From NCBI GenBank assembly GCA_964188305.1, contig OZ076889.1: a stretch of 64,000 bases of DNA. The stretch is one strand, 5' to 3'. Source of the stretch: Podarcis bocagei (Eukaryota). The translations under genes were made by a program, and so were the position numbers. Below are positions 1 to 34,154 of the stretch, piece after piece. The notes beneath the pieces were generated by a model, which had not been told where the DNA came from, did not search any database, and saw only the letters and a list, made by a program, of their open reading frames with translations. The first letter of the stretch is position 1. Every line of letters begins with the position of its first letter.

Positions 1-138
1 CGGTTTGGATTCTTAGATCACGGACTGCAGTTTCTTGAAGATGGACTTCTGGCAAGTGATGGGCTGCACCTCACAACGGTTGGGAGGAATGTTTTTGCCA
101 AAAATCTCAGAAACCTCATCAGGAGGGCTTTAAACTGA
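1..138 (+). CDS. CR1 ORF1 C-terminus (SGNH esterase-like), partial
   Basis: Frame 1 reads [45 protein letters not shown]; DGLHL motif of the SGNH domain; TGA at 136-138. Confidence 0.85.
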
Positions 139-143
139 CTAAT

Positions 144-3065
144 GTGGGGGAGGGAGACAGTGCTCCTGAAGGTAGGAGTCTATCAATTAATGAAGATGAT
201 CATCCAAATGTCATAGACCAAATGGAGCAAACAGCACGCGGACCTAGTGGTGGGAGGAAAAAATCCTTAAATAAGAGACACGGGGGAATGATTAATGGAC
301 TTCAATGTCTGTACACTAATGCGCAAAGCATGGGAAATAAACAAGATGAGCTTGAGCTCTTGGTACAGCAAACTAAATATGACATAATAGGCATCACTGA
401 AACCTGGTGGGATAAGTCCTACGATTGGAATGTAATAATGGGGGGATACAATCTATTTCAGAGAAACAGACCAGACAAGAAAGGAGGAGGAGTGGCGTTA
501 TATGTCAGGGATGTGTATACCTGTGAAGAGATCCAAGATTTAGAACCTCAAAGCCAATGTGAGAGCATTTGGGTCAAAATTAAGGGAGAGAAGAATAACA
601 GAGACCTCATTGTGGGAGTTTACTATAGATCCCCAAGCCAAACGGAGGACATAGATGATGCCTTCCTGGAACAGATGGCCAAGCATGCAAAAGGAAGGGA
701 GATAGTAGTAATGGGGGACTTCAATTACCCGGATATTTGTTGGGCGTCAAACTCAGCCAAGAGCATAAGGTCAAACAGATTCCTCACTGGCCTTGCAGAC
801 AACTTCATTGTCCAGAAAGTGGGAGAAGCAACAAGAGGAACAGCCATTTTAGATCTGGTCCTAACCAATGTTGATGACCTGGTTAGTGGGGTAGAAGTGG
901 AAGGATCATTAGGCGCGAGTGATCATGCTCTTCTGAAGTTTACTATACAGCGGAAAGGAGCAGCCAAGCATACTAGGACTCAATTTCTTGACTTTAAGAA
1001 AGCCGACTTCATAAAACTTAGGGAAGTGCTGGGTGAGATCCCATGGACAGCAATACTAAAAGGAAAGGGAGTTCATGATGGCTGGGAGTTTGTTAAGAGG
1101 GAGATAGTAAAAGCACAACGTCAGGCAATACCAGTGAGACGGAAACATGGAAGGTGCCTAAAGAAGCCAGGGTGGCTATCTAAAGAACTTTTAACTGAAT
1201 TAAGATTTAAAAAGGATGTGTACAAAAAATGGAAAAGGGGGGAAACCACCAAAGAGGAATTCAAACAAATAGCCAGCACGTGTAGACACAAAGTCAGAAA
1301 AGCTAAAGCACAGAATGAACTCAGGCTTGCTAGAGAGGTTAAAAGCAACAAAAAAGGCTTTTATGGGTATGTTCGTAGCAAAAGGAAGAACAAAGAAACA
1401 GTGGGGTCACTCAGAGGAGAAGATGGTGAAATGCAAACAGGGGACACAGAAAGGGCTGAACTCCTCAATGCCTTCTTTGCCTCAGTCTTCTCCGATAAAG
1501 AAAACAATGCCCGACCTGAAGAATTTGGAGCAAATGATTCAGCAAAGGAAACACAGCCCAGAATAACTAAGGAGACAGTACAAGAATATTTGGCTAGTTT
1601 AGATGTATTCAAGTCTCCAGGGCCAGATGAACTGCATCCAAGAGTATTAAAAGAACTGGCAGATGTGATCTCAGAACCACTGGCAGTCATCTTCGAGAAA
1701 TCCTGGAGAACAGGCGAAGTCCCGGCAGACTGGAGGAGGGCAAATGTTGTCCCTATTTTCAAAAAGGGGAAAAGAGAGGACCCAAATAATTACCGCCCAG
1801 TCAGTCTGACATCAATAGCAGGGAAGATTCTGGAGCAGATCATTAAGCAAACAGTCTGTGAGCACCTAGAAAGGAATGCTGTGATCACCAATAGTCAGCA
1901 TGGATTTCTGAAAAATAAGTCATGTCAGACTAACCTGATCTCATTTTTTGACAGAATTACAAGCCTGGTAGATGAAGGGAACTCAGTGGATATAGCCTAC
2001 CTTGATTTCAGTAAGGCATTTGACAAGGTGCCCCATGATATTCTTGTAAAGAAGCTGGTAAAATGCGGTCTTGACTCTGCTACCACTCAGTGGATTTGTA
2101 ACTGGCTGACTGACCGAACCCAAAGGGTGCTCATCAATGGTTCCTCTTCATCCTGGAGAAGAGTGACTAGTGGGGTGCCACAGGGTTCTGTCTTGGGCCC
2201 GGTCTTATTTAACATCTTTATCAACGACTTGGATGATGGACTCAAGGGCATCCTGATCAAATTTGCAGATGACACCAAACTGGGAGGGGTGGCTAACACC
2301 CCAGAGGACAGGATCACACTTCAAAACGACCTTGACAGATTAGAGAACTGGGCAAAAACAAACAAAATGAATTTTAACAGGGAGAAATGTAAAGTATTGC
2401 ACTTGGGCAAAAAAAATGAGAGGCACAAATACAAGATGGGTGACACCTGGCTTGAGAGCAGTACATGTGAAAAGGATCTAGGAGTCTTGGTTGACCACAA
2501 ACTTGACATGAGCCAACAGTGTGACGCGGCAGCTAAAAAAGCCAATGCAATTCTGGGCTGCATCAATAGGAGTATAGCATCTAGATCAAGGGAAGTAATA
2601 GTGCCACTGTATTCTGCTCTGGTCAGACCACACCTGGAGTACTGTGTCCAGTTCTGGGCACCACAATTCAAGAAGGACACTGACAAACTGGAACGTGTCC
2701 AGAGGAGGGCAACGAAAATGGTCAAAGGCCTGGAAACGATGCCTTATGAGGAACGGCTAAGGGAGCTGGGCATGTTTAGCCTGGAGAAGAGGAGGTTAAG
2801 GGGTGATATGATAGCCATGTTCAAATATATAAAAGGATGTCACATAGAGGAGGGAGAAAGGTTGTTTTCTGCTGCTCCAGAGAAGCGGACACGGAGCAAT
2901 GGATCCAAACTACAAGAAAGAAGATTCCACCTAAACATTAGGAAGAACTTCCTGACAGTAAGAGCTGTTCGACAGTGGAATTTGCTGCCAAGGAGTGTGG
3001 TGGAGTCTCCTACTTTGGAGGTCTTTAAGCAGAGGCTTGACAACCATATGTCAGGAGTGCTCTGA
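144..3065 (+). CDS. CR1 ORF2, endonuclease-reverse transcriptase, uninterrupted
   Basis: 973 aa with no stop; EN motifs LYTNAQS, GITETWW, MGDFNYP, SDH; RT motifs [26 protein letters not shown]; first in-frame ATG at 222, true start uncertain. Confidence 0.97.
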
Positions 3066-3166
3066 TGGTGTTTCCTGCTTGGCAGGGGGTTGGACTCGAT
3101 GGCCCTTGTGGTCTCTTCCAACTCTATGATTCTATGATTCTATGATTCTATGATTCTATGATTCTA

Positions 3167-5869: not shown

Positions 5870-7128
5870 TGCTTTTGAATTATGGTGCTGGAGGATATTC
5901 TATAGAGTCCCATGGACTGCAAGAAGATCAAACCTATTCATTTTGCAGATGACACCAAACTGGGAGGGGTGGCTAACACTCCAGAGGACAGCATCACACT
6001 TCAAAACAACCTTGACAGATTAGAGAACTGGGCCAAAACAAACAAGATGAACTTTAACAGGGAGAAATGTAAAGTATTGCACTTGGGCAAAAAAAAATGA
6101 GAGGCACAAATACAAATACAAAAACACCTGGCTTGAGAGCAGTACATGTGAAAAGGATCTGGGAGTCTTGGTTGACCACAAACTTGACATGAGCCAACAG
6201 TGTGACGCGGCAGCTAAAAAAGCCAATGCAATTATGGGCTGCATCAATAGGAGTATAGCATCTAGATCAAGGGAAGTAATAGTGCCACTGTATTCTGCTC
6301 TGGTCAGACCTCACCTGGAGTACTGTGTCCAGTTCTGGGCACCACAGTTCAAGAAGGACACTGACAAACTGGAACGTATCCAGAGGAGGGCAGCCAAAAT
6401 GGTCAAAGGCCTGGAAACGATGCCTTATGAGGAACAGCTAAGGGAGCTGGGCATGTTTAGCCTGGAGAAGAGGAGGTTAAGGGGTGATATGATAGCCATG
6501 TTCAAATATATAAAAGGATGTCATATAGAGGAGGGAGAAAGGTTGTTTTCTGCTGCTCCAGAGAAGCGGACACGGAGCAATGGATCCAAACTACATGAAA
6601 GAAGATTCCACCTAAACATTAGGAAGAACTTCCTGACAGTAAGAGCTGTTCGACAGTGGAATTTGCTGCCAAGGAGTGTGGTGGAGTCTCCTTCTTTGGA
6701 GGTCTTTAAGCAGAGGCTTGACAACCATATGTCAGGAGTGCTCTGATGGTGTTTCCTGCTTGGCAGGGGGTTGGACTTGATGGCCCTTTTGGTCTATTCC
6801 AACTCTATGATTCTATGATTCTATGATTCATTCTTAGGGAAATCAGCCCTGCGTGCTCACTGGAAGGACAGATCGTGAAGCTGAGGCTCCAATCCTTTGG
6901 CCACCTCATGAGAAGAGAAGACTCCCTGGAAAAGACCCTGATGTTGGGAAAGATGGAGGGCACAAGGAGAAGGGGACGACAGAGGACGAGATGGTTGGAC
7001 AGTGTTCTCAAAGCTACCAGCATGAGTTTGACCAAACTGCGGGAGCCAGTGGAAGACAGGAGTGCCTGTCATGCTCTGGTCCATGGGGTCACGAAGAGTC
7101 GGACATGACTAAATGACTAAACAACAAC
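5870..7128 (+). mobile_element. Bov-B (RTE) LINE 3' fragment interrupted by CR1
   Basis: FGHLMRREDSLEKTLMLGKMEGTRRRGRQRTRWLD; GGGGTCACGAAGAGTCGGAC and (CAA)n tail; 12-bp TSD AACAACTCTCAA at 5858-5869 and 7129-7140. Confidence 0.92.
5943..6825 (+). mobile_element. 5'-truncated CR1 copy, same family as 1-3166
   Basis: Near-identical to ~2263-3145; ATTCTATG tail; TSD ATTCATT at 5936-5942 and 6826-6832; frameshift in the A-run at ~6089-6097. Confidence 0.95.
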
Positions 7129-34119: not shown

Positions 34120-34154
34120 GTGGTCTCTTCCAACTCTATGATTCTATGATTCTA
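34120..34154 (+). mobile_element. Extremely truncated CR1 3' tail
   Basis: GTGGTCTCTTCCAACTCTATGATTCTATGATTCTA, identical to the end of CR1 copy 1. Confidence 0.8.

Follow-up and report, generated by a model that had tools for sequence, protein, structure and literature searches.

How the second open reading frame (ORF2) of a long interspersed nuclear element (LINE) is translated from a bicistronic RNA is a long-standing question, and the answers available so far, namely unconventional termination/reinitiation in L1, stop-start coupling in SART1 and 2A peptides in some single-ORF elements, all yield a free ORF2 protein. The same question is raised by a stretch of 64,000 nucleotides from the lizard Podarcis bocagei (contig OZ076889.1 of assembly GCA_964188305.1), referred to as a whole as the window in what follows, which opens with the 3' part of a LINE belonging to CR1, the retrotransposon that predominates in birds, turtles, crocodilians and many squamates. 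In this element ORF1 ends in GCT TTA AAC TGA (127-138), with the heptamer T_TTA_AAC (129-135) placed in X_XXY_YYZ phase directly before the stop codon, and a slip of one base back gives TTT AAA CTG ACT AAT GTG GGG, the frame of ORF2, which stays open to 3065. Both points had been made in an initial annotation of this DNA and both agree with the sequence and its translation, as does a third, that ATG 142 lies off the ORF2 frame. This ATG is in the frame of ORF1, and the ATGs of the ORF2 frame are found at 222 and 288. Because TTTAAAC occurs only 5 times per strand in the 64 kb, a phased copy within the 79-nt overlap of the two frames (60-138) would be expected about 0.002 times. From a comparison with CR1 junctions in other animals we conclude that the ORF1/ORF2 junction probably functions in active CR1 elements as a -1 frameshift signal, a reading to which we assign a probability of roughly 0.75.

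Positions 1-3166 of the plus strand are the 3' 3.2 kb of a young lacertid lizard CR1 LINE whose ORF1 is cut by the start of the window. That ORF1 is of the SGNH/GDSL esterase type is judged from the 45 codons within the window, which match lacertid proteins bearing PF13472 and have their C-terminus in common with these ORF1 proteins of Zootoca and Podarcis. In ORF2 an apurinic-type endonuclease lies at the N-terminus and a reverse transcriptase in the centre, the 3' end is an 8-nt microsatellite instead of poly(A), and the nearest proteins are CR1 products of Podarcis muralis and Zootoca vivipara at 93-94% identity. A program-made listing gives ORF2 as 144..3065, 973 amino acids. The features of the element are as follows.

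1..135 (+): last 45 codons of CR1 ORF1, esterase-type (SGNH/GDSL) C-terminus ending in ...NLIRRALN; from translation, tblastn and the Zootoca and Podarcis ORF1 proteins
129..135 (+): slippery heptamer T_TTA_AAC in X_XXY_YYZ phase relative to ORF1; from the sequence and from synonymous-site conservation in 44 non-redundant CR1 junctions
136..138 (+): ORF1 stop codon TGA, directly 3' of the heptamer; from the sequence
146..156 (+): G-rich run GGGGGAGGGAG, 10 nt past the heptamer and 7 nt past the stop, G-E-G in the -1 frame; from alignment
129..299 (+): linker of 57 codons in the -1 frame leading from the heptamer to the endonuclease domain, free of stops, with in-frame ATGs at 222 and 288; from translation
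60..3065 (+): ORF2 frame (frame 3, -1 relative to ORF1), open from 60 and closed by TGA 3063-3065; from the ORF listing
318..926 (+): apurinic-type endonuclease domain of ORF2; Pfam PF03372, E = 1.8e-17, residues 64-266 of the translation of 129-3062
1764..2414 (+): reverse transcriptase domain of ORF2; Pfam PF00078, E = 2.5e-35, residues 546-762 of the translation of 129-3062
3066..3166 (+): 3' untranslated region with a CR1-type 8-nt microsatellite tail, (TCTATGAT) x 5.5 at 3123-3166; from the sequence

There is no second ORF1/ORF2 junction within the 64-kb window, the sole other sizeable piece of CR1 (5942-6829, plus strand) being a 3' fragment. This is a 5'-truncated copy, 96.7% identical to 2262-3148, that has the same (TCTATGAT)n tail at 6804-6829. 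An exact 35-nt match to the 3' end and tail of the element (3108-3142) is present at 34120-34154 and probably marks an insertion so severely truncated that only this stump is left.

The junction in other CR1 elements

Searching with the N-terminus of ORF2 produced two bird gene models, from Anas and Theristicus, that share the -1-frame peptide GFKL; their DNA reads AGG GCT TTA AAC TAG and the endonuclease follows downstream in the -1 frame. The same junction occurs in a relative that is 58% identical in this region and was assembled independently from at least 24 sequencing runs, as well as in an intact CR1 on an ENA contig whose sample label is human oral metagenome. Since this contig carries an intact CR1 with an esterase ORF1 we have not taken it for human DNA, and only its junction has been used. 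With a full ORF1 as query 107 proteins were obtained from lizards, Anolis, Varanus, a snake, turtles, poison frogs, birds and alligators, and nearly all of the complete ones end in [RKED][RK][ATE]LN. The DNA of loci picked through ORF1 alone reads GCT TTA AAC plus a stop in a frog, a turtle, a grouse (Lagopus) and a second turtle lineage. In Varanus the junction is ACT TTA AAC TGA, in one ENA family (L016) it is GAG TTA AAC TGA, the sole exception at position 1 of the heptamer, and in a distant marine, echinoderm-like element (L017), for which the nearest ORF1 relative comes from the sea cucumber Apostichopus, it is AAT TTA AAC TAA. A further 80 loci (L020-L099) were contributed by JGI metagenome contigs, mostly from one bird-like sample in which about 75 copies have the same junction.

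When the junctions are pooled practically all of them read GCTTTAAAC followed by TAG or TGA. A stop codon (TGA, TAG or TAA) adjoins the heptamer in every non-decayed junction examined and the endonuclease is found at a frame offset of -1 in every copy without visible decay; the distance to the endonuclease depends on the lineage and amounts to 93, 138, 153, 162, 174, 210 or 267 nt. The comparison that the initial annotation had proposed as a check on its claim thus finds the heptamer, its phase, the adjoining stop and the -1 offset retained, at synonymous positions, in the CR1 of squamates, turtles, frogs and birds and in an echinoderm-like CR1. An esterase-ORF1 LINE from the fish Cebidichthys violaceus (L100:5300-5900) is arranged differently, with an ORF1 that ends in ...SYPHD TGA, no heptamer, and an endonuclease that lies in the ORF1 frame after an ATG, so that the signal belongs to CR1 proper and not to all LINEs with an esterase.

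In order to quantify conservation at the level of nucleotides we have used 44 junctions, deduplicated at 90% identity and each with the open ORF1 tail that was required for inclusion. From -60 to +45 the only block that is conserved to at least 95% is CTTTAAACT. The heptamer is kept beyond what the encoded amino acids need: its Leu codon is TTA in 42 of the 44 junctions, as compared with 4 of 113 codons in three other conserved Leu columns, where CTG, CTT, CTC, CTA and TTG are mixed; its Asn codon is AAC in 41/42; and Ala at residue -3 is encoded by GCT in 39/40, other Ala columns again being mixed. With Thr, Asn, Ser or Asp at residue -3 the codon is ACT, AAT, TCT or GAT, respectively, so position 1 of the heptamer survives a change of amino acid. 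The C-termini of echinoderm-like and tetrapod ORF1 proteins have only the final LN in common (EQLCLN, GNQDLN and SKHSLN versus RRALN). Such a pattern would be expected of a fixed RNA signal and not of a conserved peptide.

The searches also turned up CR1 sequences under unexpected labels and a further large group of ORF1 proteins. JGI sample Ga0065711, labelled as a metagenome, holds hundreds of CR1 ORF1 copies on contigs of up to 79 kb with bird-type junctions and is for the most part an animal (bird-like) genome. On Mb-scale ENA contigs there is a very large esterase ORF1 family (P0132-P0238), with 620 members in one cluster, and all of its proteins end in ...FGSKHSLN, which again places LN before the stop. 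CR1 ORF1 proteins are misnamed among P0052, P0076, P0079 and P0068, including 'Replicase polyprotein 1a' and 'Beta-parvin' in Varanus komodoensis, and one on a 2.9-kb contig, labelled 'SGNH/GDSL hydrolase family protein [Klebsiella pneumoniae]', is probably animal contamination.

Frameshifting weighed against reinitiation

The place at which ribosomes would have to enter the ORF2 frame is narrowly defined. Upstream of the heptamer a stop closes the -1 frame 0 codons before TTT in the marine element and 2 codons before it both in the second turtle lineage (L101) and in the main bird subfamilies (L079); since the ORF1 stop lies on the other side, the frame must be entered at the heptamer itself. 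Downstream, the linker of the window element has 0, 4 and 10 stops in the -1, 0 and +1 frames, respectively, with a probability of 0.02 by shuffling for a frame without any. Six loci for which ORF1 alone was the criterion of choice have linkers of 33-76 codons with 0 stops in the -1 frame versus 2-9 in each of the other frames, which by shuffling has a joint probability of about 5e-9. The downstream ORF is, therefore, in the -1 frame, overlaps the heptamer and is open from there onward. The linker is kept open, yet its sequence evolves fast.

The context of the ORF1 stop, UGA CUA A at 136-144, resembles UGA-CUA-G, a stop context that is prone to readthrough. Readthrough was considered as a route to ORF2 and rejected, the 0 frame having four stops within the 57-codon linker, the UGA of ORF1 included.

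A conventional start on an AUG was examined in the same set of elements. Five lineages, from a frog (L014), a turtle (L015), an ENA family (L016) and birds (L019 and L079), lack any ATG in the -1 ORF ahead of the endonuclease motif YTNA, which contains the catalytic Asn, and in the others ATGs sit at differing codons (4, 5, 16, 22, 24, 31, 39, 45, 48, 53 and others). Because of these ATG-less lineages and the scatter of positions elsewhere, a conventional or coupled AUG start is not the general mechanism.

This bears directly on the alternative that survives best, in which ORF2 is reached by termination-dependent reinitiation or by an unconventional start in the linker, much as in L1 or SART1, with ATG 222 or 288 serving as the start in the lizard and the heptamer being kept for some other reason. 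The two ATGs do precede the endonuclease domain in frame, Podarcis gene models begin at the equivalent of ATG 222, and no structure that would stimulate frameshifting was found (see below). In addition, translation of human L1 ORF2 needs no fixed AUG, as Alisch et al. are said to have found in 2006. At the junction itself, however, no AUG overlaps or adjoins the stop codon, the nearest (142) is in the ORF1 frame and the first in the ORF2 frame is 84 nt past the stop. Reinitiation would require neither a constant -1 offset, nor a linker that is open from the heptamer onward, nor fixed TTA, GCT and AAC codons, and we regard it as unlikely.

Several observations do count against frameshifting. 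The region 139-215 folds with -14.4 kcal/mol, as compared to -15.9 +/- 2.8 kcal/mol for dinucleotide shuffles (z = +0.55), minimum free energy z-scores range from +1.1 to -3.5 over 14 lineages with no common fold, and RNAalifold predicts no pairs in an alignment of 13 lineages, with the proviso that pseudoknots and G-quadruplexes lie outside the models of these tools, so that a stimulator of a non-standard kind may be present. A stimulatory stem-loop or pseudoknot is thus not found by this approach at the usual 5-9 nt downstream of the heptamer, and the spacer to the G-rich run, the one conserved element in this region, exceeds that range at 10-11 nt. ATGs 222 and 288 of the lizard family, lying in frame ahead of the endonuclease domain, would permit an independent start, and the freedom of L1 from a fixed AUG belongs here as well. 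Ratios of nonsynonymous to synonymous substitution for the linker (window element, L003 and L016) are saturated, with proportions of synonymous differences of 0.55-0.73, and do not single out the -1 frame, and codon-position periodicity was not found in linker codons 4-12. Finally, the 44 junctions, many of which are dead bird copies from one sample, amount to about a dozen independent lineages.

The initial annotation had drawn a weak possible pseudoknot from GGGAG 148-152 with CTCCT 163-167 and AGAC 155-158 with GTCT 178-181; the segments are present, and the pseudoknot, like any other stem-loop, is rejected on account of a fold that is no better than shuffles, inconsistent z-scores and the lack of a consensus structure. 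Some of the bird and turtle sequences allow hairpins that include the G-rich run to be sketched by eye; these are specific to the lineage and do not align. A G-quadruplex was likewise rejected as a general stimulator, as judged without a formal model, since four GG tracts are present only in some lineages (for example Lagopus, GGGGGAGGGGG) and not in the lizard copy.

What is conserved 3' of the heptamer is the G-rich run alone (GGGGGAGGG), its first GGG located 10-11 nt past the heptamer, or 7-8 nt past the stop, in 37 of the 44 junctions. In the -1 frame it encodes G-E-G-(D), with GGG at codon 7 in 36/40 and synonymous variation at codons 8-10 (GAA/GAG, GGG/GGA/GGC and GAC/GAT). It may be kept either as RNA or as peptide. 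The candidates for a stimulator are the stop codon that always adjoins the heptamer and the conserved G-rich run 7-8 nt beyond it.

Less likely alternatives: peptide conservation and frame correction in transcripts

A second alternative holds that nothing is recoded, the ORF1 protein needing its C-terminal ...ALN and TTTAAAC being a by-product. In its favour, nearly all esterase-type ORF1 proteins have LN at the C-terminus. Conservation of the peptide does not, however, account for synonymous codons that are fixed as TTA, GCT and AAC when the same amino acids elsewhere are encoded by mixed codons, nor for a residue -3 that varies (A, T, N, S, D) and nonetheless retains T in the third position, and the residues directly upstream have diverged wholly between tetrapod and echinoderm-like proteins (RRALN versus EQLCLN and SKHSLN). 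It also leaves unexplained both the frame relation of ORF2 and the open linker, and we consider it very improbable.

The element is represented in RNA. In two raw-read RNA-seq runs carrying the same species label, with about 40-50 reads per position over 1-1200, no insertion or deletion was reported over this region at a reporting threshold of 5%, so that frame correction at the transcript level is excluded at that threshold. None of the variants listed with a share of at least 5% falls within 100-159, which includes the heptamer, the stop and the G-rich run; 55 less-supported variants lie beyond that listing. The flanking positions 57, 87, 99, 160 and 189 vary among family members in both RNA and DNA reads. 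Since the reads are in both orientations, read-through from host genes probably contributes to the signal, and the reads establish presence in RNA, not autonomous expression. The weakest alternative, that transcriptional slippage or editing joins ORF1 and ORF2 in some transcripts, can be dismissed with near certainty, as the reads span the junction without indels and homopolymers within the heptamer do not exceed a length of 3.

Proposed mechanism and its meaning for CR1

The initial annotation had suggested that a -1 slip at U_UUA_AAC yields a fusion of esterase, endonuclease and reverse transcriptase. The observation on which it rested is real, and its interpretation is supported by strong comparative evidence, from conservation of the junction to the open linker and the ATG-less lineages. 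According to the frameshift model, when a ribosome translating ORF1 arrives at U_UUA_AAC its P site would hold tRNA-Leu, on UUA, and its A site tRNA-Asn, on AAC. The majority of ribosomes would advance by one codon, meet UGA and release the esterase-type ORF1 protein (ORF1p), and a minority would slip back by one base, with tandem -1 movement of tRNA-Leu and tRNA-Asn onto UUU_AAA. The shifted ribosomes would then read CUG (CUR across elements) ACU AAU GUG GGG and so on, through the 57-codon linker and into the endonuclease and reverse transcriptase. The predicted output is an abundant ORF1p together with a rare fusion of ORF1p, linker, endonuclease and reverse transcriptase of roughly 1,300 residues, similar to Gag-Pol. 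More speculatively, a slow termination step may allow peptidyl-tRNA-Asn to slip from AAC to AAA, in which case the terminator itself may take part, and with peptidyl-tRNA-Asn on AAA the G-rich run would be at the usual distance from the P site. Slippage is probably inefficient, because no downstream structure is conserved; a low rate would fit the biology of LINEs, where far less ORF2 protein (ORF2p) is needed than ORF1p.

The closest parallel is provided by ORF1a/1b of coronaviruses and arteriviruses, which CR1 resembles in the heptamer U_UUA_AAC, in its phase and in a downstream -1 ORF that encodes the polymerase. The slippery site of equine arteritis virus is G_UUA_AAC, corresponding to the G_TTA_AAC variant of the ENA family. 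In these viruses a conserved pseudoknot, which contains the 0-frame stop, follows 5-7 nt downstream, whereas in CR1 no conserved structure was found and the stop adjoins the heptamer. In this last respect CR1 is similar to Rous sarcoma virus, where the gag-pol site A_AAU_UUA is directly followed by the gag UAG and a G-rich stretch comes after the stop; there the stimulator is a defined stem-loop/pseudoknot, unlike in CR1. The overall strategy would be that of retroviral and other long terminal repeat (LTR) elements, with an abundant structural or RNA-binding first protein and a rare fusion that bears the reverse transcriptase. CR1 differs from these in being a non-LTR element and in having no protease to split the fusion, and no 2A-like motif was seen in the translated linker when inspected by eye, without a formal scan.

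Human L1 and Bombyx SART1 face the same task as CR1, the translation of ORF2 after a long ORF1 on a bicistronic LINE RNA. They yield separate ORF1 and ORF2 proteins, and CR1 differs in having neither a stop-start overlap nor a conserved AUG and in having a conserved heptamer. A paper on LINE recoding and 2A peptides describes SART1 as using UAAUG stop-start coupling and calls the mechanism of ORF2 translation unclear (PMC3708506), and HeT-A and TART are the only non-LTR cases found in the accessible part of a 2016 review of recoding (PMC5009743). No mention of frameshifting in CR1 was found in the accessible portions of the CR1 reviews and ORF1 surveys PMC13343379, PMC4120745, PMC4316615 and PMC2817409, of PMC3708506 and PMC5009743, or in the open literature that was searched; an earlier remark may be contained in Kapitonov & Jurka 2003, Haas 1997 or Kajikawa 1997. 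Both a -1 frameshift at U_UUA_AAC and a fusion of the Gag-Pol type are textbook knowledge, and it is their use by a clade of LINEs that, as far as we have found, is apparently new.

Extended to its full scope, the frameshift model would hold that all esterase-type CR1 LINEs, from echinoderm-like elements to those of birds, make ORF2 only as a transframe fusion of esterase, endonuclease and reverse transcriptase, at a U_UUA_AAC-stop signal that was fixed anciently, has no classical structure and is perhaps stimulated by the terminator and the G-rich run; we lean slightly toward this more general statement. If it holds for all of these elements CR1 would be the first clade of LINEs to have a Gag-Pol-like strategy of expression, and a natural case in which U_UUA_AAC is conserved without a recognizable pseudoknot. 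The reverse transcriptase would be delivered fused to the esterase-type ORF1 protein in a ratio set by the efficiency of slippage, and both cis-preference and the ratio of ORF1p to ORF2p would have a physical basis built into the element. The finding would then bear on the assembly of CR1 ribonucleoprotein particles, on the strong cis-preference of CR1 and on the annotation of CR1 ORF2, which present gene models begin at arbitrary ATGs.

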